A stretch of DNA of 64,000 nt from Trichoplax adhaerens (Eukaryota; Animalia; Placozoa). Positions 2,920 to 63,161 of the stretch are shown here, one piece after another (the stretch's first letter is position 1; each line of letters opens with the position of its first letter). The stretch spans positions 4,546,008 to 4,610,007 of the forward strand of contig NW_002060943.1 of NCBI RefSeq assembly GCF_000150275.1, given 5' to 3'. Made by a program: the position numbers and the translations under genes. The notes under the pieces were generated by a model, which was given only the letters and a program-made list of their open reading frames with translations, was not told the origin of the DNA and made no database searches.

Positions 2920-4420
2920 TCTAAGTAAAAGTGGATTCTTCGTTTCTCTTTCATGGAGAAATGGCAGCGATGCTAGCTCATGTGGAATGTCACCTATTCG
3001 ACAGTGTGTCACTGTCGTTTACGCTGAGACAGTCAGTCATTCGAGGTATCATCCGTTTGTGTTGAAGGGTTAATCCCACCTGATCCTCTTGCTTTCCCTA
3101 ATGACTGAAAATTCTTCTTAATTGAGATCAGAAGTCGTTCAAATGATTGATATATTACAGGAGTAAGTGATATTATCCTGCCATGTCATGCACAATGAAT
3201 TAATTATAGTTATACGATCAGCAGAAATGTTGAGCCTATCCACAAGCAGGTCGTGTGGGCTGTGTGCAAAGGTTCATTAATAATGTGATACTGTCAATAA
3301 ATGGCGAAGCAAATTTTGAAACATGTAGTAAATTTATTTTCAGTGTCATAGCTTCCATTTGGGGGGGGGGGAGACTCCAGAGGAAAGTATTCTTCCTTTC
3401 TCTTTCAAAGAATAATTACAACTGAAGGCTGTGGCAAAGGTTCGTTAATAATGTGATACTGTCAATAAATGGCGAAGCAAAATTTGAATGGTGTAGTAAA
3501 TTTATTTTCAGTCTCATAGCTTCCAATTTTGGCGGGGGGGATTCCAAAGGAAAGCATTCTTCCTTTCTCTTCCAAAGAATAATTACAACGTAATACACGC
3601 GTTGTTATTGAATGTAGCGTCTATTATAATGTACACAAATTGTAGACAACTTGAAAAATAATGAAGTGAGTGTGTTTGCAGTCTATTAAGCTTTTAGATT
3701 TTGAAAGTATTCTTCGTTTCTCTTTCAAAGAGAAATTACAAAGTAATACAAATTGATGTTGAATGTAACGTATCGACGCGTACATCGAAAGATAAATTGT
3801 TAGATATCTTCAAATGGTATAGGGAATTTTGCTGTATATTAGCTTAGATTTTTTTTACCTATTGAAAGTATTCTTTGTTTCTCTTTCAAAAGAGTAATTA
3901 TAAGTAATACAAGTTGATGTTGAATGTAACGTATAATATACCGTATAGTAGCTTTGATTTTCCCCAAATGAAACTATCCTTCGTTTCTCTTCGAAGAATA
4001 ATTACAAAATACTATTAGATACTCTTGTTGAATATAACGTATACTATACAGTATAGAAGTGGTAGACAACTTCAATTGATGTTGTGAATTTATTGACACT
4101 GTGTGAGCCTAAATATTGAATGTATTCTTGGTTTCTCTTTCAAAGAGAAATTACAAAGTAAGTAATACTAGTTGCTGTGATTGTAACATATATTATACTG
4201 TTTATAAGTTGTAGACAACTTCAATTGATGTAGTAAATGTCTTTGCAATGCATTAGCTCAAACTTTGAAAGTATTCTGGATTTCTCTTTCAAAAAGAAAT
4301 TACAAAGTAACACGAGTTGATGTCGAATGTAATGTATATTAGAGATATAAATTGTTAGACATCTTCAAATGATGTAGTGAATTTATTTTCAGTGGATTAG
4401 CTTAAATTTTTACCTAATAA
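2920..4420. repeat. Degenerate satellite-like array, ~150-bp period, with a conserved core
   Basis: Core GAAAGTATTCTTNNTTTCTCTTTCAAAGA..AATTACA at ~2927, 3383, 3550, 3703, 3864, 3970, 4118 and 4267. The intervening sequences are also homologous (TTGAATGTAACGTAT, TAGACAACTTCAA). Confidence 0.85.
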
Positions 4421-31480: not shown

Positions 31481-33090
31481 ATGCTACACCGCCTGGGAGT
31501 TGTTCGACATCGTGTAATGCTACACACTGTCGTACGTTCCCCAGCAACAAGGCAGCTGGACAAGCCGTCAGTAGCGTTGCTGCACAGTTCTACCTTTTTA
31601 GCATCCGGTAAGCTTACTGCTGTGCTTCCATTAAAGTGTTCAACTCTGCAATTTGTTATTTTGCAAGTGATTGCATGACCTCAATGTGATTCTTTCTTTC
31701 ATGGTGATCGGATTTTTCTAATTTATATTATGCTTATGAGAATGAATTATACTTACTGTACTTGTACAGTATATCCTGTCTTTGTACGAATTATTCACAT
31801 TCTTACTCTTCAGACAGTACTACATTATACAGCGCTTACCTACCGGTTTCTTGTGCGGAAAATTTACTTGAAAGTATTCACAATGGACTGTCACTACCTT
31901 GGTGGATGACTATAGCTGTGACGACGATTACATTAAGAACATGTATCACTTTACCATTAACAATTTATCAGCAAAAAAAGTCCGCAAAATTGGTGTTGCT
32001 ACAGCCTGTAGTCAAGGAGATAAGCGAAGCGGTCAAGTACAATGTAGCTACTAAGTGCCGTCGCGAAGATCTACCCGTAGAAGTTGCTGAAGAAAGATAT
32101 AAGACCTTAGTAAGCGATTGATACTTTCATTTTTAGCAGTTAATGCGTACTCGTATAATAAGTAGGAAACATTCTGTAATCATTCCATCGTAGACTAATA
32201 TACTCGTACAGTAGAACGATAACATACGTATTAGGTATTAGATTGCTTTGCTTGCTTATTGCATAGTTCAGTGGAATGGTACGAGATTTATACAAAAAAG
32301 AAGGATGCCAGCCATTTAAATTATTTCTGCTACCATGGACTCAGATGCCTTTATGGATCTCCATTTCATTAGGCCTGCGTGATTTATCCATTTATAAACA
32401 AGGTTGGATTAATAGAAGTCCTACATGAATGTTGCTTATGATACTGTAACAATACTGCTATACAGAAATTATAATTTCAAATTGTTGGCAGCTCCAATTT
32501 CGCGGATAACTAACATTTTTATTGGGCAGATCCCGCTATGGCAACTGAAGGCCTTGCTTGGTTTTCAAATCTCCTACTACCCGATCCTGCTTGGATCTTA
32601 CCAATATGTTTTGGTCTGTGTAATCTTTTAAATATCGAGATAAATGCCGCAGGTCGACAAGCGCCTGGCAGGATTCAAGCAATTATGAAAAAAGTTTTCG
32701 TCACATTATCTATTGTCATGGTACCGGTTGCTACACAAATACCTTCGGTACGTTTGCTATAGTAATACATGATGCTTCTATACTTGCATTAATTATCTAC
32801 CTTTCAAAAATGCATACTAGTTACGACTATTTATCTACCATGTCATGAATTAATTCGATATGTATAATTTATCTTTTATTCTCTTGTAGTGTATGTCGTT
32901 TTATTGGACTTTATCCAGTTTTTATAGCTTAGTGCAAAATAGTATTTTGATGTTACCAAGAGTTAAAAGAATTGCACGTATACCACAAACTCCGAAGGAA
33001 AGCAAGCATCCATTTAGAGACTTATACGCAATATTTAGTATCAGAATGAAAAAATTTATCCAGTTGCAAAAGCAAGCGAATAGAAAGTAA
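31481..33090 (+). CDS. COX18: Cytochrome c oxidase assembly protein COX18 (Oxa1/YidC family), 5 exons
   Basis: Arg-rich mitochondrial presequence MLHRLGVVRHRVML. Then LESIHNGLSLPWWMTIAVTTITLRTCITLPL, GCQPFKLFLLPWTQMPLWISISLGLRDL, TEGLAWFSNLLLPDPAWILP, and MSFYWTLSSFYSLVQN..RIPQTPKESKHPF. Confidence 0.92.
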
Positions 33091-35182: not shown

Positions 35183-36358
35183 ATGGTTCTATATTCAATG
35201 GAAAAGTACCAACACAGCATAGTGCTAGTAGCAATTTGCCTGTTATGTCATGACACCATTTTGATGGTTAATTCATTCAACTTGACTCGGATTGGAGAAA
35301 CGATCGGTCAATTAGCCGATCAATGGGCTAATATTGGTAAAGTCGTTGACCAAGTATTGCCTTGCCAATTTACTTGCCCACATGGTAGGTGAATGAAATT
35401 TGAAGCAATGCTGGATATATGACTGGGATCAAGTCAATTTCACCAACTAGATATATCAATTTTTCTACCATCAACTTGGTCCAACGATTTATATAATACG
35501 TACTACAAATTATTTCTTCATAATCGATAGTTAATCCAGCTGTCTGGCTCTCAATTTAGTCAGCCACATAATTCGGAGGGCCTGGATTAGATTCGCTACT
35601 GTATTACTTACTCATACCATGCCAGCTATCTTTGATACCTATGTAATATTGTATTGTTGCTTGAAATGTTTATCATTGTTACTTTACTTTTATTATAAAA
35701 ATATTACTCGTATAGTACAGTACATGGGGATCCTCAGAGTGGCTTCCTGTTGTTTATATACCCTTACACTACAGTAGTAGAAACCCTAACTATAATCATA
35801 TATTAGCGTAGAATTTCTATACACCACTATAGACACAATCTTTAATGCAAATCAATTATGTAAATTAATCAATTTTAATGCTATGTGTATCATCAACAGG
35901 TCAAAAACTAGTCAGAAGAGACGGTGCTAGACCCATGCCAAACGGTTGCGGCACCGATAAATTTCCGGTAAGACAGGAATTGAGTACTCCTGCACCGCAA
36001 TTTTGGGGACTTTATAGTTGTATAGGAAAATAATGCGATGATTCACAATGCTATTTTTGTACAGGTTGATATATCGTTCATCCCAGGAGCTACTAGTTGT
36101 TGTGATCGTCACGATATTTGCTATTCTAGTTGTGGCGTAAAGAAGAGGAAGTGTGATGATGAATTCTTCAATTGCTTAAGCAAAATTTGTGATATCAATT
36201 ACAAACATGAGAAAGAAGCGCCAATGAAAAGTCATTGCAAACAATTTAGTCAAATAATACATTCTACTACCCTTTCACTGGGTTGTGCACCCTTTATAGA
36301 AGCTCAAAAGCAAGCATGTCACTGTATAGCCATAAATCGAAATCAGGACGAGTTATAA
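35183..36358 (+). CDS. PLA2G12: Group XII secretory phospholipase A2 (3 exons)
   Basis: Signal peptide (SIVLVAICLLC) and CQFTCPHG in exon 1. Exon 2 (~35900-35967) reads QKLVRRDGARPMPNGCGTDKFP. Exon 3 reads TSCCDRHDICYSSCGVKKRKCDDEFFNCLSKIC...LGCAPFIEAQKQACHC and ends QDEL. Catalytic His-Asp is intact. Confidence 0.93.
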
Positions 36359-38168: not shown

Positions 38169-41100
38169 ATGTCTGAAAATCATATTTTTGATGATTCTAT
38201 CAGGCCTGAATACTCGTATAGTCAGTATATGGCACCACAATTATACGTTACCATTCCTGAAGAATCGGTTAGCACTTCAGTAGAGCTTTACTTCAAAACT
38301 TGAATTATTATTTAAATAATTTATGAAAATGTCATATAATTCTACTCTTCAGCTGCTAATTGACATATTTGTAAAATGATATTCATTTCTTTTAAAGTTA
38401 AAGCCCACGTTTAAATTCGCCAAACATCTAGGAATTCGTCAAGAGGCGGATAAAAATCTTTCGGCAACGCTTCAGGTATAGACAATCAAGATCCAAATAC
38501 AATAATTAGCCCTACTTAGCACTGAAATTTAATCGCGAATATTCTAGGAAAATCAAATAATAATAGATCACATTTATCAATTTCTTTCAAAAAAGTTACA
38601 TAAAATACTGTAAAATCATTTTTTAAATTTATCAGCTAGTAAATTAATCAAAATACTTACATCTAAAATTTAACACTCAATGTCTACCACTATTTCTATC
38701 TCAACAGTATGAATTGATAGGCTTTTAAATCATAAATTGTGCTATATTTTTCAAATATAAGTAAATCTAGTTTACAATTTTATATGAAATTGCAAAAGTA
38801 TATTGTAGGTAAAGAAGACAACCTAAATTTATTTTTAAACTCGAATTAGATTCAAAATTGGCATGGCCCGGTTAAAATTTACACCATGCTGGCTGAGTCA
38901 TCTACAAGTTCATCTCCATTACCGCATTACAATATGCTTTGCCCTCTAATGAGGGAAAACATGCACACTTTTGACGAAAATGGTCAATTTCGTACTATAC
39001 TTCCAGGAGAAACTGTTAGCGTTATCATCAATTATTACAATGATGCCTCGACTTTAACGCACACGTATGATAATATATCGATATTTAAATCAAGTAAGCT
39101 TTCGAAGCGGTTAATTCTCTAATTTTTCGAATATTGTTACGTAGATTATCCGATCTTGTTGTGGTCAAGCAAGAAAAAGAGAACAAGGAAAATTCACTGA
39201 TTAAAAATTTAAGAACGTTCATGGAGGTTACACGTAAATTGCCATACAATATCCTTGAAGAGAATGTCTTCACTAGACCATGGAGCGTTGCTTCTGGTAA
39301 GGAATTAGTTGATCACAGTTAATATCTTTCTAATTCTACGTGGTATGATCGTTATATTTTTATAACCGTAAAACAACAGCAAAATCCTCAGTTCGTTTCG
39401 AAGTAAATCGAAATGTCAAAGATAATTGATCTGTGCTATTTCAAGCCTCGCACTTCAAAATGGTTGCGAGGATAATTTTATTAAAATAGATTTTTTGTTC
39501 ATTAGTTCTTGCATAACTTAATTAATTCAAGCAGACAAAATGACTAATAGATTGAACTAGCATTATGTAGGAGGCAGTTCAATCAATCAAAGCAAGATTA
39601 ATGATGTACTAATGTTGTGATTATGATGTATAGCTAAATTATATATTAGTAGCTCTCTTTGTTTATTTATATTGCAATATATTTGATTAAGGATTAATAC
39701 ATTTTTTAGTCGTTTAAGCATTATTTACTTATGCTTTTACAGGTACAATGCCGGAAGAATATGTTAATTGCATTGTCAAAAATGAACTCAAAAATTTAGA
39801 AGATGATAAAGCGAAATTAATGTTTTACGTGGAATTCTTAAATGAAAGAATTCAACTTGAACCTGCAACTACGATTATTTGCAGCCAAACATTTCAAGAT
39901 AGTAAGGCAATTACGTTTATCTGTAACTAGAAACGTTATTAATTATGCTATTTATTCTGACTTATTTTAAAATGTAGAACTCATTTTCGACGATTAATTA
40001 AATAAATAATAAAAATCAGCTATTACATAGGTAAATTGAAAACTCTAATCATCCACATTAATTCGCACAGGTAGTGTAAAATGGCGCTTAGCTCGAATCT
40101 CTCCTGATAATGGTCTGTCTACAAATTTCACAAAAGTGATGATTGCCCTTGAAGGAAAATTCAATATAGACAATAACAAACCAGAAGTATTTATAGTTGA
40201 TCCTGGTAAATATATTTTACCTGTTCTATTTATCGTGCGTAACTCACGCACCATGCATGCATACTCATAGAAAATTCTATTAAATCACTTCAAATGTCCC
40301 CTTTCTAGCTATTACTTTATTTCAGTAACATGATCTCAGTTTAGCTAGAGCACTGCAGTTACTTATAATACAGACCGCTTTTTGCATAATAACTAATTAT
40401 ATTATAATTAATTAGTTTATTACTTTCTCTAGCAACAGATTATGTTCTCAAGAAGATTCCTTTCGAACAAATTAATATCATTCATGAGGTAAAGCCAGAA
40501 ATTACTTTAAGTTACAAAATACGAGAATATTCAAATCGTGATATATAAATTGGCTATATTATCAATTAAGTAGACTTATTGATATTAACTTAAAAACTAC
40601 CGGTAATAATCGTAAAATTAAATTAAACTAAATCATTTTTAGATAATTAAAATACTTCTTAAAATTTTCGGATAGCTAACTTTCTCTTATTTTCATAGTC
40701 CGTTGAAATAATTACTTCATACCTGATTTTTATTGCATATTATTAGAATTGTATTACTATTATGATGCATCCACTTCATGATTCGATATTGCCCAAGCGA
40801 GTTTGGATTAAGCTACGGTCCACAAAAAATTTAACTTTAGAAAGTAATTACTTGCAATTTACCTACTTTGGATCGACAATGATCGATACTGAGAGATCTA
40901 CTATACAGCGTAAGTAGTAACATGCAAATCTGTTTACACTCCTTATCATTTTGAAACTGTATAAAAATAAAAGCTATAATATTCATAATAATGGAAAACA
41001 GCTACTAATTACTTGATGAATTGTATAAATAAATAATTCATAAAGTGCACGTAATTCGAAAATTTGAAAAGAAATTAAATTTAAATTAAAATCAGAATAA

Positions 41101-44100
41101 TAACCTACTTGACTAAACTTACGATTTCTATATCTTAGAATACATTTGGAACAGCGAAATTGGCCTGCCGCAATTTCATCAATTTTATGAAGCAAATCAG
41201 CATATGGATTATTCCTCTTCGAACGTGAGAATGATGAATAATTTCGGCAGTGATTCTAATAACAATTTCCAAAGTATGAGTGAAGATCCGAATCTTAGAT
41301 CAGGTACATACTCCAACTCAATATATTGTTAGCAGATCTAGCAACTTTATATGCTCTATTAGTCAATCATTAATAACCAAAGATAACTGGTATCTTTTTT
41401 ATCATCTTACATGATAACTGCAATTGCCAATAATTAATTTATTGCATTATACAATTATTTTCTCCATTAATCCAAACACAAGACGTTATATCTTTAATTT
41501 TCTTCATGCTCTGCATTAATTTATAACAATTACATTGCATTTTTCGATAACGATATCAACTTTAATACTGGTTCATAGTTCAACAAAAAATTAAAGACTT
41601 GAAAGTTAGTAAGTCACAGGATAAAGATAATAATTTTAACAGTGGCTCCGGCAGTGCATATCATTCCAGCCTTCACGGTAATTCAGGAAATCAATCTAAA
41701 GGTAAGTTGTAACCGTTCGTATTCTGATAGTTTTATTTGGAAATAGTTGGCAATAGTACTAGATTAAGATAAGTATCCTAGTATTTATGAAACCTTTGCT
41801 CTTCAGTATCTACTATCTTTCATACAATGAGCGATAATAATCCTGGCTATACGCGTAGCATTAATTAAATCTATTTTAAACTTTATATTAGTTCAAGATA
41901 GTATGAAAGATGAAAAAATGATTAATCAACAGCAAGAATCTGCCAATAAGGACAGTGCCTATGTAAGTGAATTCGATCCCACGACCTCATCAAACTGTTC
42001 AGTTGTTCAACCTGAAGGTACGTCATAAAAGTATTCTGCTATTTTCGTTACGAGTAGTAGTAACAAAATCTTTTTTAATCTGCATAATAGTTCGAGATGG
42101 AATGGAATACAAAAAAATAACTAATCTACAGAACAACTACAATAATGTTGACAGTGCCTATGGTAGTGAATGGGATCCCGCGGCCTCATTAAGCCATGCA
42201 GAAGTTCAGTCTAGAGGTAGGTCATAAATGTATTCTACTATTTTCATTAAGGAATTGTTAGGATCATTACTAAAATTGAATAGATTCTCTAGTATTTATG
42301 AAACTTTTGCATGGTAATCTCTACTATCTTTGCAGGCAAGCAGTATACCTCAAATCTTGAAGAAAGTAGCGCACGTGCCTTAGATTGTAGCACTGATAGC
42401 AGTAACGATATTAAAAGGTGCTCCAATACCAATCAGAAAAGTAATACCACATCGAAAATTCAAAGTGAGAAATTCCAGTCTTTCGATGACTAATAAGATC
42501 ATGAATTAATTAATTGCTATATATGTATTTTAAACCATCACATAGTACTAATTCATCTACTGTATTATTTAAGACGAAACGTATTCATTTCGATTATTTC
42601 ACTTTTGATAGCCTTGAATACGAACAAGTTTGTCAATCGGGAAAACATTTCACTGCGTCATATGGCTTTGCAACAGAGAAAGAGGACTTTCCTAAATGCG
42701 GCAATGTTACTAGATTTTGCAAAAACTAACGATATTGAGAAAATTATAACAGCTAATTTGCGTTATTGTGCCGTAAAAGATAAAAATGGCAATACGTAAG
42801 TACTTTAGCTAACTTGCATTATTAACGAACTATATAAGATCTTGGAGAATAAGCTATAGCTAATTTATTATCACTTTAAGAAAAACCGTAAATCCTCACT
42901 ATGCTGATTAATCTTGTCTTGCAGCAAGTATACAATGCTAACGAATTTATTTCTATAACAGCCCACTTCACATAGCTATTATAAATCATAATGAAGATTT
43001 AGCAATCCGCTTTATTCAATGCATGAAGAAACAACCAAATCTTTTCAACATACGAAATAACATCTACCAGGTATACGGCAGTTTCTAAATTTTAAATTAG
43101 TATGCATACTTAAAGGAAATGTACCAACTAATGGAATGGAATGTTATGGAATTGCTCATGCATCTGTCATCACCTTTAATAGACACCATTACATTTAGCG
43201 GCAAATATGGGCAAAAGTAAAATTGCTCTTCAGCTTGTCTGTGCTGGAGCCTGCGTATATTTGTGTGATCGTAATGGTGATACCCCTCTCCATATTGCAT
43301 GTCGGCGCGGAGAACTTGAATGTGTAAGAGTGTTGCTACAGCGAACCAAAAGCGAGCAAGGGAGAATAATTCTGTCCTATCCCGAATATGAAGAATATAA
43401 TCGCGGAGGTAAATAGTAGATTAATGATCGCATCAATAGTGATAGCTACAAATTGGATTAAAAGTTATAACTATTAGATACTCTAAGATGTCACCTTAAT
43501 AACCTAATATTTACAATATAGGGAATACACCACTTCATTTAGCTATAAAAAGCGGAAGTGCAGCAATTATTAAATTATTTCGTGACGAATATGGATTTAG
43601 GCTAAATATCAAGGTAGGTTGTAAAATTTCTATTAATTTTATGGTAAATCAAAAAATTGCTCATATTCGACATAAGCTAACATTAAGTAAATAAATTTTG
43701 TTATATTCTTTCAATGTAGGAAAAAAATTTCGGGAATTCACCATTGCATCTAGCTGTTATGTGTGATAGTAAGCCTATTGCCCAACAATTAATCAAGGTA
43801 AATTTATAGAGGATAATAAACAATGCATGAAGTTAATTATTAAAGAAATATTTCAACTTTCATTAGTACTTAATTTATTAATATTACTGTTCTTCTACGA
43901 TGGCAAGGCTGGGGCAGACGTTAACATAAAAAATTGCCGTGGAAACACTCCACTTCATGTTGCCTCATTTTTGAATTTGCAAGATATGATTTATTTGTTA
44001 ATTGAACATCATGCTGATGTCTCTATTGCTAACAACGAAATGGAGAAACCGATTAAGCTTTGTTCTGAAGACTTGGTAAGCGATTAGTTAAGTAGTTAAG

Positions 44101-44315
44101 TCATGGTTATACATGTGGAATATGTAAAGATGATCTATTCTAACAATTTAACATAATTAATTTGTAGTTTTTGCAGTACCTTTTCCAATATATTCACAAA
44201 CGCAATCATAATCCAGTAAACAATAACTAATAATTCTTTAAAATTTGTTTCTTTAATGCAGAGTGATGAACTTAGAATCTTAAATGAGCAATCAAACAGT
44301 ACGATGGTATTTTAA
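38169..44315 (+). CDS. NFKB: Divergent NF-kB p100/p105-like protein: degenerate RHD + IPT + Ser/Asn linker with degrons + 6 ankyrin repeats
   Basis: RHD exons: ..APQLYVTIPEES (38169-38267), LKPTFKFAKHLGIRQEADKNLSATLQ (38398-38475), IQNWHGPVKIYTML..PHYNML (cf. p50 ICNYVGPAKVIVQL..HAHSL), DKAKLMFYVEF..ICSQTFQDS. IPT: WRLARISPDNG..IIHENCITIMMHP..VWIKLRS..ESNYLQFTY. The p105-type pre-ankyrin helix AMLLDFAKTNDIEKII..AVKDKNGNT resembles ALFDYAVTGDVKML..AVQDENGD. Six (T/S)PLHxA ankyrin repeats lie at ~42790-44075. The last exon is uncertain (stop at 44230 or 44315). Confidence 0.85.
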
Positions 44316-52200: not shown

Positions 52201-55200
52201 GTAGATGATTCATCATTGCTAGCTGCTACCGGAAGGTATATAAGCTCGGCAGATAGTTAAATAAAATCAGTTCTCTAGTTATTGAACTGTTATAGTGTTA
52301 AATACCGTATTACAGTGGAAATATCTATGTTAGGATAATTCTGTTAGACTATCCTTATTTAGTTAACTTCTAATTTGGATATACTATGTTTTAATATAGC
52401 ACTGACTTTTTATGACAGTGACACTTATACACATACTGAAATTAATAGTTATAATAGGGAATGCAAATCATCTACTTACAGTTCGAATCATTGTGATTGT
52501 AATTTACTTATGGTAGATTGTAAATTATCATGGAAATGTTCCGTGATAGGACATATCGTAATCTGACTATTCTGTATTAGTCATTACATGTCTATGTTGG
52601 TAAATACTGTTGTCTGCATTAAGGGAGCAGTAGCTAAACTTAATATCTAATTCAGTAAATGATTCCGAAGTTAATTGTATTAACTATGACTCATGAACTA
52701 TTGAGGAATAGTATATAAATGCAGTATATCGTGAATTAAAGTGGATTCTCAAACTTAGTGTTTAACGTAAAATACGAGGCGTTTAAGTCTTTGTGTAGTC
52801 TGCTAGTAGAGCAAAAGTACTTGTGATAATGCAGATATCGTTCCTTGATACGTGGCTCAAGGAGTTGACTTATTGATCGTATATTACGTTATCTTGTTGC
52901 AAAGCTGTTTTGTGACATGAACGCAGAAGCAAAGGCGCCTACTTTCTTATGAGTAGTTAAGGCATACTGAATCCCAGAGAATTTAGAAATTTTGAGATTT
53001 TTTTACATAATCCTTATTACGAAACAGCTTTGTGCCAACAGCGAACAGTAAAAATTCTACGAGAGACTAGCAATCTTAAATTAGAACCTAGATCAAAACT
53101 TATGGATTTATGTTGTACTCTATGATAAAGAAATATAGATTCTACTGTATTTTATAGTGAAAACTAGTAACAAATTTTATCATAATTGAAGTTTAAATTT
53201 AATTCTACTTAGAAACATTGGCTATTAAATTAGAATTTTAGAATGTACAGCACTTAACAAATATTTCACAATCAAACATTGCTATATCATAACCGGATGA
53301 GTAGTCAGATGCTATGATACTAAATTTACTGTAATCGAACTCATTTAGTTATTTTTAAAGCTATAATATTTACACGAAATGAAATCTGAAAGAAAAATTC
53401 TGAAAATTACCTTTAATTACACACGACAATTAAATCTACGTAATTGTGCTTGCGTTTAGATTTTACTTTCTAAATTCAGCTTAATCAATCTTTTATAATA
53501 GTTTCCGGGTTATAGGGGCCCTGTTGTCGTTTTAGCAATGGTATTGGCGAATGACAATGGGCCTCATCCCTATAAACTCATTACTATTGGCAGAGAAATT
53601 GACCAGTCCTATCATACGCTCAACAGGAATGGCGAAATAGTACCAATTTCTTCGGTTGATAAAAGCCCTATGCAAGTGGCTATTAAACAATTTGAAGTTA
53701 TTGAAAATTATGACTTCAGTTGCGGGTAATTTAAGCTATTTATATATTACTATCAATAGCTTTATTACGAATTAAGAATGATGTTTCAAACTTTCAATAC
53801 TACTACTTGAACAGATAGATTTTGCAGGTTTTGTACGGTATACTCGTATCAATAGTGGCAGATTTACAGCAGTTAGTTGATATCACGAAATAATTAATAA
53901 TTTCTAAAAACTTAAAATACAATAAGGCTTATTTTGTGTACAGAATCTTGTAATTTTACTTTCTCTACAAATGAGATGTATTAAGAATTATACTATATTT
54001 TTTGGAAATTCGATGCTGAGTTAATAAATTAAGCAATAAGTTCTTGAAATGCAATCAACTTAATGATTCATGTCTTTTCATACCTAGATTCCGTAGTATA
54101 GGCTTCATTCGAACCAGAAAGGATGAACTAGCAGAGAGTATAAGGGAGAAAACTATACTCCTATACCGTTATATTCTGCGCCAGGATCATTGGCAGTATC
54201 TGCCGGAACTTCAGTTTGGGCAGTCTAATTCTGAAATTAATGGTAAAATCGAAGCTGCAATTGAACTTGTCTTAAATTTTACTATATTGTTTCTGATATC
54301 TGATTGAACATTCTAGTAAAACTGGATTAATAAATAATTGCTAAGTCTGTTGCTTTGTATCCTGCACGTAGATGTACAATTGTTAGAAAATTTTATCAAA
54401 AAACGAACGGAGACTAATTCTCAAATCCATATATTTAAATTGGGTTTCTTTGCCTATCCTGGCCGTTTAGAGGATTTTAATAGTAATAGAGGTCCTCCAA
54501 AATTTATAGCAACAAAACCACTTATTCAAGAACGTATGTCAAGCTTATGATGAATAACTTAGATTCATATATTACCACGACCATAATATGCCCATTTTCA
54601 TATGAAGAAATTACTGACCTATGCATTTTCCACATGATTAACATGAAGATTTTAAATGCATCCACGTTAGGAAGTCCTCAACTTTTCATATGTGATATTT
54701 GTCCTGAATCTTGTCTAATGTCTCAAGGTTGCGAAATTATGATCACAGCTAACGATGCAAAAGGACTTGATATGGCCAATTATGATATCATTATTAACTA
54801 TCATCACGGTAATTAATATTAAAATTGATTTTTATAATTGCAATTGACATCTTGAAACCTCAAATCTGTAAACGCTAGATTTTGAGCTATTTATAATCAA
54901 CAAGAATCGTTTTATAAATTATATTATAAGCATTCGATTGCTACCTTCATGGTAATAAATAGAACTGCGAACAGATATCAGTACTGGTATATACCGAGAA
55001 TATCCGGTACCCTTAGGAAGAAGCGAAGCTAGAAGCTATGTTCAGTTCATTGCAGACGCGGTAATGTAACAGTATTGTCTGAGCCATTTTAGTTCTTTTA
55101 ATAATATTATTTTACTTTTTTCAAGTTTTTATCAGTTGATATTCCTTAAAGCTACCAGAATGGGCTTTGAAATAGTTATTGCTTCAATATATTAAGCTTG

Positions 55201-55454
55201 TGTTGCATTTACTTCAGCTAGTGCCATCCAATTCGACATTATGCTCATTTCTCTATAAAATTGTTAATCTTCAATTTTTCGATTTGATTAATCTTGCACA
55301 GCGCTGTCTAGTGTTTGAAATGCCTCCTTATATAAGTTATGATCAGAACCAAGTTCCTCAGTCATATCCAATTGAAGTAATGACGACAGTACATTTATCA
55401 CGAAAAGGTTCAAGAAATATCTCGGAAGGAAAAGAGTTTTACTACCGCAGTTGA
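49266..55454 (+). CDS. RHD-only Rel/NF-kB-family protein, paralog 1 (RHD-N + IPT, 8 exons)
   Basis: MNNLQNFEISIVKEPW (49266-49313), IIQRPRYSTEVANATHGPIKGTPIIQ (49532-49609), a 3.9-kb intron, then FPGYRGPVVVLAM..PHPYKL (from 53502), GFRSIGFIRTRKDELAESI (cf. p50 GFANLGILHVTKKKV), FKLGFFAY, SPQLFICDICPESC..GCEIMI and RCLVFEMPPY..VHLSRK..SEGKEFYYRS* (55454). Confidence 0.85.
51090..52032. repeat. Diverged direct duplication within the large intron of RHD paralog 1
   Basis: ATTATTGAAAAGTAGTATTCT, AATGGTAATACTATCTGTTAA and CGTAAACCGTCAGCAAAGCGACG.GAGTTTG.ACTAGT occur at ~51215-51390 and ~51845-52032. Confidence 0.85.
52280..52913 (+). repeat. Dispersed non-coding repeat, copy 1 (possible non-autonomous element)
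   Basis: Colinear with 62670-63161 (AGTGGAAATATCTATGTTAGGATAA, TGGAAATGTTCCGTGATAG, TTATTGATCGTA, TTGTTGCAAAGCTG). This copy has ~150 extra bp. Confidence 0.85.
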
Positions 55455-58668: not shown

Positions 58669-61600
58669 ATGAATTCTAAGCAACCTATTTCGGTGATTAT
58701 TATCAAGGAACCCGGGGTAAGTTTTCCATAGCATACTAAATCATATTAAAACTAAGGAACATTTCGAATCGGTGTTGTCAGCTGGTCTCCACTACATAGG
58801 TAGCAAATTAGCCACAAGCCGCAGTTCTCTGAATACTTCGTCAATAAATATTCCTCAACCTATTATAGAATGAAACCATTTTGTTTTACATTAGTTCTTA
58901 ATGTGAATGAATAACTCATAAACTGATAATAGAGCGTGCGTCTATCTTATTTTGAGTTATTCCGCGAAGATTTTTCATTTCAGTTTTAAAGCTGTACTTT
59001 TAATCTTAACGCCGTTTTGAGTATTATAAACGAATGGTAGCTCATATATCAACGGTTAAGTTCTAAGGTATTGAAGGTAGAAATATTATATTTGTACAAA
59101 AAAATTTTATCGTGATCAATTGTTATAGCTTATAGTTCCAATTAGTCTTGAATGGAACGATACTGCAATTAGGCTGACTATCTTATATAATTTATACTAA
59201 ATTTTATTATCCGTCGCATTGCTGGCGGACTGCAGCTTACAACATTACGTATAATTTGTTTTAATATTTTTACTACTAGACTATTCAAAGGCCACGCTAT
59301 TGGTTAGAAATTAAACGCACCACACACGGTCCAATGAGAGATCCGCCAATACTCCGGGTACGCTGCATCATTTTGCCAAACGTTCTAAATCGAATTATGT
59401 ATAGCAGTAACATACTATGTCCATATTTCATAAAAGATTGCCCATCGAGCTATCGCAGTATCAATCGAATTTCTATACCGTTACTCTGTATTAGAAGCTT
59501 AACTTAGTCCAGTATAATTGGTGAATTAAAGTCATACAATTTCTGCTTTTTAAGTTTTCGTAAATTGTTATTGTAGTTGTTCTCATTAGCAATTTGTCAA
59601 ACTGCGGTGAGAACTTTCTCTATTTTACTTGTATCATTTTTGGAAATAATATCGTTCAATACCTTAATTATGACTTAATAGAGAAGTAGTCTCAGTTATA
59701 CAAAATGTAAGTATTTGTTATTGCTTGATTAGATTATAAGTATATCAAGCCTTTATTATGTACGCTGCCACTAATAATCACATCGAATAAGATTTTATAG
59801 GTAATACGCTACTATCCCTCCGTGTATTTGCCAGTGATACTATTTCATTAGAATATTTACTACGCCTCATTGATTGTGCCAATTATTGCAAAAAGACAAA
59901 ATTTCAAAAATATTCCTACACATTTTGAAGAATGAATCCAATTCTACTATTAGATCACAGATGGTACAGTTAGAATTGATGGTTTAACTTTTGCCTTATT
60001 AGCTCTTCTAATAGTTTTCAAATTATAGGGGTCCTGCTGTCGTTATTGCTATGCCTATAGCGAGTACAGAGGAGAGATTTCCTTCGCCCCATCCTAATAA
60101 ACTTATTGTTGTTGGTGGCCTAGAAAATGACCAAAGCGTTTTCACCTTAAATGAGGACGGCCGGATGATGCCAATAACTTCTAATTCCAAGGCTCCTGTA
60201 CATGCTCTTATTAGACAATTTGAAGTGGATGGAAATCATAATATCGATTACGAGTAATTAAAATTAGCCTATATATATATGCATGTGATATATACCAATC
60301 ACGAATTTCCAATTTTTAGAAAAATAAGGGCTTTATTGAATCTTATACAAAGATTAACTACACAGCTCTACTCTAGCCGAATACTACTTCTAAAGACTTC
60401 TACAACGAACTAACAGAATAATCTAAAGTTGCATGCTTTTATACTTTTCGTAGCATTCGCAGCTACAATCCGCATGGCAACCTTTTACCTTATTTTACAC
60501 ATAGTTAAATTATTCTTAGTAAGACTATTCTACTGCGGACCATCATTAATCTAATATATGACTTACAGCTCTATTTTTACCTACAGCCATATTAGTAACT
60601 CAACAGCTTACTGTATATAGTCATCTGTGCTCTAGCATAGAGTCTCTACCACTACAGTCTATAGTTACAGCTACCAAATATCTCTTAGGATAAATATCTA
60701 CCGTACATTATACTACACATGGCTAACAGTCTACAATCACAATACTAAGTTACATTACAATGCAGCATCAACAGAAATGAATAAGGGTACTAAGTATTAA
60801 GAATACTCTTTTGCGAATAGATCAATTACGAGTTTTAGGTGATCATATCAATGATTAGAGATTGCACTATCGAGGCGATACTTATAGCCTATTATTATTT
60901 TCATAAATTTTCGAAAAAATTGAATTTTGTTCAGATTGACCTACTGACATTTCCTTCTACACTTTCTCTCAAACTAATACATATTTATATTCACGTTTTC
61001 TTATAAAATTGACTTTATTACGAAGCCCTAACAATAAAAAAAGCTAATTATGCATCTTTCCAATGCTAGATTCGGTAACATAGCTTTCGTTCGAATCCAT
61101 TCAAGGAAACCTAAAAATCATGATGAGAAGTGGCTGCCAGATAGTATCGCAGAAAAGACCAATTTACTATCTAAGTTCATTTTAGGTATCGGGTTAAGAC
61201 CATATCTGGAATCAAAATTTATGGTGGTCAATCCTGAAATTAGTGGTAATTACAAAACCGTGTTCAATTTTATATCCTCAATTTTAACAAATAAATTACA
61301 TTACTATACTCGAAAGTCTACCTAAATAATTAAACTAATTTAGTAGAGTAAATAACTGATAAACATATCGTTTATTCAATCTCCTGCTTATAGATGATGA
61401 ATTATTAAAAAATTTTGTTGTGAGGCAAACCGGTAACGAGAACGATATGCAATACCAAAAATTTAGATTGTGTTTCTTTGTCTATCCTGGCCGTATAGAG
61501 GAATTTTATTCCATCAGACATCTTTTGAGTTATATAAAAACAAAACCTTTAATACGAAATGGTATGAAAAGCTTATTTTAAAACTTAGATTATGATAGCA

Positions 61601-62449
61601 GCAATATTTCTATGTAATGTGACTATTTATTAAAATATATCTTATTAATATGATCAACATCGACATACAAAATGACTTACTGATAGACAGTCCCCGATTT
61701 GTCATAAACGATATTTGTCCCAATACCGGTCTTATATCTAAAAGCTGCGAAGTTATGATCACAATAAAAGAGTTGATAGGACTTGATATTGGGCCGTACG
61801 ATATTATGATTAAGTATATTTCAGGTAATTAATATTCGTATTGATTTTATGCTAATTTTATTAACATCTTAATATTTCAAGATACAAAGAGCTAATAATG
61901 CTTATTGATCTATAAATGGAAATCATTTCATAAATTATGTTTTTGCCGATTGATTACTGATTTCAAGATGATATTAATAAATAGAAGAGCGACAACTTGA
62001 TAATATACCTCAAGAATTTAAAATCGATATAGAACATATTATTACATGGCAAGATTCGTCAATTCAGTCGATACCTGACGCGGTAACGTAATGTTTAGTA
62101 CTGCCTGCACTACTGTTTTGTTATCTCAGAATTTTTTTGCTTTTGATTAAATAAATAATCCTTGTCTCTGCGAATATGACATTTATAATCCTTTTTGCTT
62201 TAATATTTCAAATCTATTTTCGTGAACTTTCATTGATATTATCGAGTTTGATATCATCTCAACTTTGCTTAATCCACTATTCCTGAATAGGGCTGTTTAA
62301 TATTTCGAATGCCAATTTATGAATGCTCTTCTGATTCGTGGGGGAATTCTTTACCAGAACTAAAAAAAGTAAGGGCTAAGGTACATTTAGCACAAAGAGG
62401 TAGCAAAATTACATCGAATGAAGTAGATTTTTACTACACAAGCGAATAA
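58669..62449 (+). CDS. RHD-only Rel/NF-kB-family protein, paralog 2 (RHD-N + IPT, 8 exons)
   Basis: MNSKQPISVIIIKEPG (58669-58716), TIQRPRYWLEIKRTTHGPMRDPPILR (59280-59357), FSNYRGPAVVIAM..PHPNKL, FGNIAFVRI, KFRLCFFVY, SPRFVINDICPNTG..SCEVMI and GCLIFRMPIY..VHLAQR..SNEVDFYYTSE* (62291-62449). Exon phases match paralog 1. Confidence 0.85.
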
Positions 62450-62669: not shown

Positions 62670-63161
62670 TTAATTATCATTCTGTTATTTTGTTATACAC
62701 TGTATTATCGAGATTAGAGTGGAAATATCTATGTTAGGATAACTTTGTTTATAACTTACTTATGGTAGATTGTAGATTATCGTGGAAATGTTCCGTGATA
62801 GTATATATTGTAATCTGATTATTTGCATTAGTCGTTAGATATCTATGTTCATAAATACTGTTGCTTTCATTAGGTAGCAGTAGTTAAAATTTGTCTTTGA
62901 TTTATTGGAAGGCTTCAAAGTTAATATTACGAACTAGAATGCCTGAAATATTGTAGAAGAGTATTAAATGCAGTATACCGTATAATAAAATTAATTCTTA
63001 AGGTTAGTGTTTGATATAAAATGCAAGGTGTTTAGGTCTTTATGTTGTCTGCTGTAGAGGGAAAGTGTTCACGATTGAATAGATATTGCTCGCTAATACG
63101 TGGTTCAGGGAATCGACTTATTGATCGTACGCTAAGTTATTTTGTTGCAAAGCTGCTTTGT
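62670..63161 (+). repeat. Dispersed non-coding repeat, copy 2
   Basis: Same orientation as, and colinear with, 52280-52913. Confidence 0.85.

Follow-up and report, generated by a model that had tools for sequence, protein, structure and literature searches.

The stretch of DNA analysed here (hereafter the window: 64,000 nucleotides of Trichoplax adhaerens, contig NW_002060943.1 of assembly GCF_000150275.1, positions 4,546,008 to 4,610,007 of the forward strand) is AT-rich (about 31% G+C) and comes from a genome of 105.6 Mb in 1414 contigs. It contains the placozoan p100-like NF-kB gene (Table 1), in which three consecutive exons, here designated A, B and C, had been noticed as paralogous copies of a module that encodes the motifs GSAYHS, DSAYVS and DSAYGS, respectively. 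From the following lines of evidence we conclude, with high confidence, that A, B and C are exons 10 to 12 of this gene, and that their motifs lie between a Rel homology domain (RHD) and a set of ankyrin repeats.

First, a profile made from exons B and C found a single real match among 1.84 billion proteins, together with one low-complexity artefact. This match is the 878-residue protein RDD44621.1, named "Nuclear factor NF-kappa-B p100 subunit [Trichoplax sp. H2]" in GenBank and corresponding to TrispH2_003408 in Kamm et al. 2019. It holds A, B and C in that order, with about 407 residues before them and ankyrin repeats after them. Second, tblastn with RDD44621.1 recovered an identical exon series in the window and in the H2 locus (L003). 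The searches were done exon by exon, full-length comparisons used RDD44621.1, and the junctions were placed by comparing the short stretches between anchors with that protein. In the resulting model all 20 exons are accounted for, every intron is of the GT-AG type, the exon lengths total 2637 nucleotides and the phases are continuous. Third, the RHD part and the ankyrin part share one reading frame at the level of this gene model, the structure of which matches that of the GenBank model. Fourth, the window and the H2 gene are about 99% identical, with the same 20 exons in a near-identical locus that is flanked in both cases by PLA2G12 on the upstream side and by two RHD-only genes on the other. 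An identity with insect Cactus was also considered and was dropped, as the database match is a Trichoplax protein.

Table 1. Exons of the placozoan p100-like NF-kB gene (positions are those of the window).
Feature	Position	Strand	Description
Whole gene	38169..44315	+	20 exons, 878 codons plus stop; very probably the placozoan p100-like NF-kB gene; orthologue, Trichoplax sp. H2 RDD44621.1 / TrispH2_003408
Exons 1-8	38169-38267, 38398-38475, 38850-39064, 39145-39296, 39743-39901, 40071-40205, 40433-40488, 40747-40909	+	predicted highly derived Rel homology region (DNA-binding and IPT)
Exon 9	41139..41303	+	phase 1-1; first part of the S/N/Q-rich linker; in-frame ATG at 41204; acceptor tatcttag/AA, donor CAG/gtacat
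Exon 10 (A)	41579..41701	+	123 nucleotides, phase 1-1; degenerate copy; NSGSGS 41638-41655 overlapping GSAYHS 41650-41667; conserved Lys 41602-41604
Exon 11 (B)	41892..42017	+	126 nucleotides, phase 1-1; DSAYVS 41951-41968, then EFDP; conserved Lys 41915-41917
Exon 12 (C)	42091..42216	+	126 nucleotides, phase 1-1; DSAYGS 42150-42167, then EWDP; Lys-Lys 42111-42116
Exon 13	42336..42464	+	129 nucleotides, phase 1-1; last part of the linker
Exons 14-19	42612-42795, 42962-43070, 43183-43408, 43522-43613, 43720-43797, 43908-44075	+	IkB/p100-type ankyrin repeat domain
Exon 20	44262..44315	+	short C-terminal tail and stop

The ankyrin half of the protein is readily recognised. Pfam identifies ankyrin repeats, and nothing else, in RDD44621.1 (Ank, 7e-39, 6 stretches), and also finds Ank on single exons. 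Residues 604-854 match the structure of the p100 ankyrin domain (4ot9) in a single stretch (5e-30) in a PDB search, further matches being IkB-beta, Bcl-3 and IkB-alpha. The Rel half appears too derived for sequence methods, which accounts for the blank results of Pfam (in RDD44621.1, on single exons and genome-wide) and of the PDB sequence searches (phmmer on the RHD-like exons and a profile of the three paralogues of the locus). Its recognition comes from predicted structures and from published work. The ESM Atlas look-alikes of residues 1-400 all belong to RHD families (score 0.94, 211 shared features), and the ESM Atlas model, aligned over residues 15-364, gives template-modelling (TM) scores of 0.42-0.45 to Relish, Dorsal, RelB and NFAT, with 0.45 for the first three. 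A single-sequence AlphaFold2 model of RDD44621.1 had a predicted local distance difference test (pLDDT) value of 30, and was discarded as unusable. HHpred has detected a Rel homology region in TrispH2_003408 (Kamm et al. 2019, Table S2), and AlphaFold2 likewise gave an RHD on the independent H1 model TriadITZ_000500, described with RHD, IPT, low-complexity and ankyrin parts (Romanova and Moroz 2025). From these models and reports, the eight upstream exons are predicted to encode a highly derived Rel homology region (residues ~15-353).

Between the two halves lies a linker of about 250 residues (354-603), which is S/N/Q-rich (S 15.6%, N 12.4%), polar and contains few hydrophobic residues. A glycine-rich region is absent from the protein (at most 4 Gly in any 30-residue window), and Pfam finds no death domain in it at E up to 1. 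The ankyrin domain is followed by 24 residues, in which no DSxxxS pattern of a C-terminal degron occurs. As eight in-phase Rel-like exons stand upstream in the same model, the motifs of B and C fall in the RHD-ankyrin linker, and not at the N-terminus of a stand-alone IkB. The order RHD, motifs, ankyrin repeats matches neither the p100 nor the IkB arrangement. A preliminary description of this DNA had placed a p100-type motif in an IkB topology; its position N-terminal to the ankyrins stands, whereas the protein is not an IkB, since a predicted RHD precedes the motif.

Two further features of the protein may be mentioned here. The tripeptide RKR (residues 598-600; 42677-42685), the only basic cluster in the whole protein, adjoins the first ankyrin repeat at the end of the linker, whereas the nuclear localisation signal of p100 and p105 is found where the Rel region ends. 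Read-through of the exon 8 donor (40910-40921) meets a stop after two codons; conceivably, retention of this intron would give an RHD-only, p52-like product without proteolysis.

The sequence and its translations bear out what had been described of A, B and C, namely their coordinates and lengths, their symmetric 1-1 phase, their splice borders, and the three hexapeptides with lysines upstream. Each exon has AG before it and GTAAGT, GTACGT or GTAGGT after it; each has a length that is a multiple of three, and its first two bases complete a codon. The proposed paralogy of all three is strong for B and C (41% amino-acid identity; z = 12.9 in a shuffle test) and weaker for A (z of about 3, p 0.008-0.02). 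The likeness of B and C extends into the flanking introns, which are 75% identical over about 40 nucleotides on each side, so that the repeat unit is a 199-nucleotide segment of exon plus intron (199-nucleotide period). The intron following C (42217-42335) is homologous to most of the intron following A, where the counterpart of the exon 13 acceptor has decayed. Exon A is thus the older copy: an old tandem duplication of an exon-plus-intron unit gave rise to A, and was followed by the later 199-nucleotide duplication that generated B and C. The similarity of exons 9 and 13 to the module is not significant in the shuffle test.

One lysine is invariant in A, B and C, 12 residues before the Asp position of the motif. 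As for the motif itself, GSAYHS of exon A had been taken as the counterpart of the B and C motifs, a view that the alignments contradict: in both DNA and protein, the position homologous to DSAYxS is occupied in A by NSGSGS. Neither NSGSGS nor GSAYHS has the acidic or hydroxyl first residue of the consensus, and A may be regarded as a decayed copy of the module. The pattern [DEST]S[AG]xxS occurs only twice in the whole protein, at residues 469 (B) and 511 (C). In the six-frame translation of the 64 kb, DS[AG]xxS occurs five times: two occurrences are those of exons B and C, and the minus strand has three, of which two include a stop.

The hexapeptide of exon C is identical to residues 865-870 of human p100, as had been pointed out (PMC6027159; PMC10317156), and that of exon B differs from it by one substitution. 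In human p100, DSAYGS is recognised by SCF-beta-TrCP after phosphorylation by IKK1 (PMC6027159), and degrons with DSA are an accepted variant for beta-TrCP, as exemplified by p100 and NRF2 (PMC10317156). In exons B and C a lysine stands 12-13 residues before the motif, in a polar linker of the flexible type, a spacing that resembles that of known substrates. The acceptor lysine of known beta-TrCP substrates is located about 9-14 residues upstream of the motif. Concerning the enzymes, the genome encodes a beta-TrCP D domain (G000:C1407:2714578-2714691; 61.8 bits, for a cut-off of 25), and an IKK homologue, TrispH2_007459, has been reported (Kamm et al. 2019). IkB-alpha has not been found in placozoans (Kamm 2019).

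From these features we tentatively favour, at a level just short of an even chance, the view that the module is a candidate internal phosphodegron in this p100-like NF-kB gene. That B and C would each be a beta-TrCP-type phosphodegron is a possibility to which we give slightly less credence. We propose the following sequence of events. In exons B and C, the D-S-A-Y-x-S motif, the acidic residues that follow it and the lysine that precedes it by 12-13 residues would together make up a working beta-TrCP-type phosphodegron. When a signal arrives, both serines would be phosphorylated, either by the IKK homologue of Trichoplax or by a priming pair (for example CK2 plus GSK3). Binding of SCF-beta-TrCP and ubiquitination of the lysines of the linker would follow, with proteasomal removal of the ankyrin half or of the entire protein. 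This would release the gene's own Rel part and/or the two downstream RHD-only paralogues, which have no other known IkB. The presence of two motif copies would raise avidity or the chance of engagement.

Several observations weigh against this phosphodegron reading, and most of them are what would be expected from an alternative that we consider rather unlikely, namely that the module is neutral filler, a recently expanded piece of a fast-evolving low-complexity linker, which is spliced in, carries no specific signal, and matches DSAYGS by a coincidence that arose in a D/S-rich sequence and was copied once by duplication. First, B and C have a ratio of nonsynonymous to synonymous substitution rates (dN/dS) of about 1. 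The motif core is 83% identical in nucleotides, as compared to 75% for the flanking introns, a difference that is not significant (p = 0.36), and the exon outside the core (62%) is more diverged than the introns. Second, the clustering of amino-acid identities is not significant when the choice of window is allowed for (permutation p = 0.10), and both exons stay open in 8-13% of neutral simulations. Third, the generic DS[AG]xxS pattern is expected by chance, from our own estimate, in about 5% of proteins of such composition. Fourth, relatives of the module are absent from the 1.84 billion proteins searched by profile, in which no orthologue from another placozoan genus was found. Two other points bear on the phosphodegron itself: without a glycine-rich stop signal, partial processing is not assured, and a genome scan for the IKK scaffold domain returned nothing, such a scan being uninformative for a helical domain split over exons.

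In the comparison of the T. adhaerens (H1) and H2 lineages, the motifs of the window and of H2 are identical, and the lineages differ by only about 0.7%, too little for constraint to be detectable. Gene-wide, exon divergence (0.64%) equals intron divergence (0.75%) in the comparison of the window (38169-44315) with the H2 locus (L003 10001-16147), a result that counts on the side of neutral filler. Of the 17 exon changes, the majority, as judged by eye, affect the amino-acid sequence, also within the ankyrin repeats, which suggests relaxed or diversifying evolution, the counts being too small for a test.

Against neutral filler stand four points. The DSAYxSExDP block keeps 8 of 10 residues between B and C, versus 9 of 31 elsewhere (a-priori Fisher p = 0.008). 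In its exact form, the p100 hexapeptide is much less common than the generic pattern. The protein family in which it occurs is the only one expected to have a degron of this kind, and the lysine spacing is right. Finally, the reading frame and splice sites are kept in both copies. On balance, the evidence for selection on the motif is weak, and the phosphodegron remains a candidate proposed from sequence.

A second alternative, which we regard as very unlikely, is that a separate IkB-like ankyrin protein starts at the ATG at 41204, for instance from an internal promoter, as mouse IkB-gamma does from Nfkb1. In such a protein, the motifs would be at the N-terminus and would vary in number by exon skipping. 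This ATG, which the preliminary description took as the start codon, is indeed in frame in exon 9; placozoans have no recognised IkB; the five consecutive exons 9 to 13 are all in phase 1-1, so that any of them could be skipped without a frameshift; and the intron between B and C is only 73 nucleotides long. However, exon 9 has a good acceptor (41138/41139), from which the frame is open up to the ATG, and is in phase with exon 8, continuing the eight upstream exons (38169-40909). Furthermore, the sole database gene model, that of H2, joins the RHD to the ankyrin repeats and includes A, B and C, and the independent H1 model also has both parts. A word search for database peptides of 47-150 residues that contain exon C found none. 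As for phase symmetry, it is a precondition for tolerated tandem exon duplication that is common to exons 9 to 13, and hence is no evidence of regulated skipping.

Equally improbable is a phospho-regulated short linear motif with a reader other than beta-TrCP, whereby the phosphorylated block would control nuclear import, the contact between ankyrins and RHD or another partner: the second serine is in a CK2-type context (S-E-x-D) and the first in a GSK3 priming context (S-x-x-x-pS), E-x-D-P follows the motif in both copies, and the linker also holds the RKR cluster, adjacent to the first ankyrin repeat. However, nothing points to a particular other reader, whose role beta-TrCP, encoded in the genome, could fill: one of its proven sites has the identical hexapeptide.

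Similarly to human NF-kB2 p100, the Trichoplax protein combines an RHD with IkB-like ankyrin repeats, and has a lysine about a dozen residues upstream of the motif. However, the human motif, which operates with NIK/IKK1 and SCF-beta-TrCP, comes after the ankyrin repeats and a death domain, whereas the Trichoplax motif comes before the ankyrins and is duplicated. Moreover, the processing of human p100 stops at the glycine-rich region, whereas the Trichoplax protein is devoid of a glycine-rich region, of a death domain and of a C-terminal motif. IkB-alpha and Cactus also present a degron (DSGxxS) followed by ankyrins, with lysines upstream, but they are stand-alone proteins devoid of RHD, with Gly at position 3, whereas the Trichoplax motif is internal. 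Unlike the N-terminal degron of IkB-alpha, the Trichoplax motifs are separated from the first ankyrin repeat, which follows them, by about 90-135 residues, and from the preceding Rel region by about 115-160 residues. Drosophila Relish is cleaved in its linker by a caspase, and is not targeted through a beta-TrCP motif. The sponge Aq-NF-kB, the nearest precedent, likewise has a serine-bearing segment, a 171-residue insert, between the Rel part and the ankyrins, but this insert follows a glycine-rich region and shares no sequence similarity with the Trichoplax module. In Aq-NF-kB the main IKK-dependent serines are C-terminal, and the serine-bearing region before the ankyrins was deleted in the processing assays.

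The placozoan gene itself is already known: TrispH2_003408 (RDD44621.1) and TriadITZ_000500 of T. adhaerens are the gene studied here. It has been published as encoding an NF-kB with a derived RHD, ankyrin repeats and a low-complexity region, and with no death domain or glycine-rich region (Kamm 2019; Romanova and Moroz 2025). In the published accounts of placozoan NF-kB consulted here, neither the triplicated module nor its DSAYxS motifs appear, and a full-text literature search for DSAYGS returned papers on human proteins only.

As for the neighbourhood, two other Rel-homology-like genes lie downstream, and the three are on the plus strand within 25 kb. The second gene (53502-55451, +), which has no ankyrin exons, is probably the orthologue of TrispH2_003409; its open frames contain RHD- and IPT-like blocks, GYRGPVVV...PHPYKL, then FKLGFF, then an IPT-like exon, and its single exons are not recognised by Pfam. 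The third gene (60015-62446, +) is 48% identical to the second over the core exon. The non-coding direct repeats at 52481-52913 and 62733-63161, which are 10.25 kb apart and 75-85% identical, indicate that the second and third genes arose by segmental tandem duplication. Upstream of the NF-kB gene, an exon of a group XII secretory phospholipase A2 (36026-36355, +; Pfam PLA2G12, 1.4e-21) has the same place in the H2 locus. Further upstream, an open frame (31762-32121, +) contained in a local G+C peak (40%) resembles part of an Oxa1/YidC-type insertase, and a 60KD_IMP gene is annotated at the matching place of the H2 locus. Three sets of tandem direct repeats (1537-2070, 3266-3539 and 4029-4310) have periods of 149-183 nucleotides and 67-95% identity.

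In the scheme of a 2026 review, placozoan NF-kB fits the class with ankyrin repeats but without a glycine-rich region or phosphorylation sites. This assignment, together with the reported absence of IkB-alpha, raises the question of how placozoan NF-kB is activated. The exact human p100 hexapeptide, duplicated as part of the module in the RHD-ankyrin linker, provides a specific target for IKK co-expression and Ser-to-Ala assays, and such processing assays are already in use for sponge and cnidarian NF-kB. If the module is not functional, it would serve as a warning about short motif matches in low-complexity linkers that evolve fast. If it is functional, the control of NF-kB by IKK and beta-TrCP would be independent of the position of the degron relative to the ankyrins, and the module would hint at a way from a p100-like ancestor to the IkB arrangement.

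We also put forward, as an ambitious and on the whole unlikely proposal, a joint reading in which a duplicated beta-TrCP phosphodegron between the Rel domain and the ankyrins would represent a third topology, besides those of p100 and IkB, and would include both a route to gene fission and a role as sole IkB. If this were true, a single break of the gene within the linker would suffice to produce both an RHD-only NF-kB and an IkB with its degron already at the canonical N-terminal place, and would thereby offer a concrete path to the fission into NF-kB and IkB genes that has been inferred for cnidarians and bilaterians. One placozoan protein would then be both a transcription factor precursor and the sole signal-degradable IkB for its two RHD-only neighbours.

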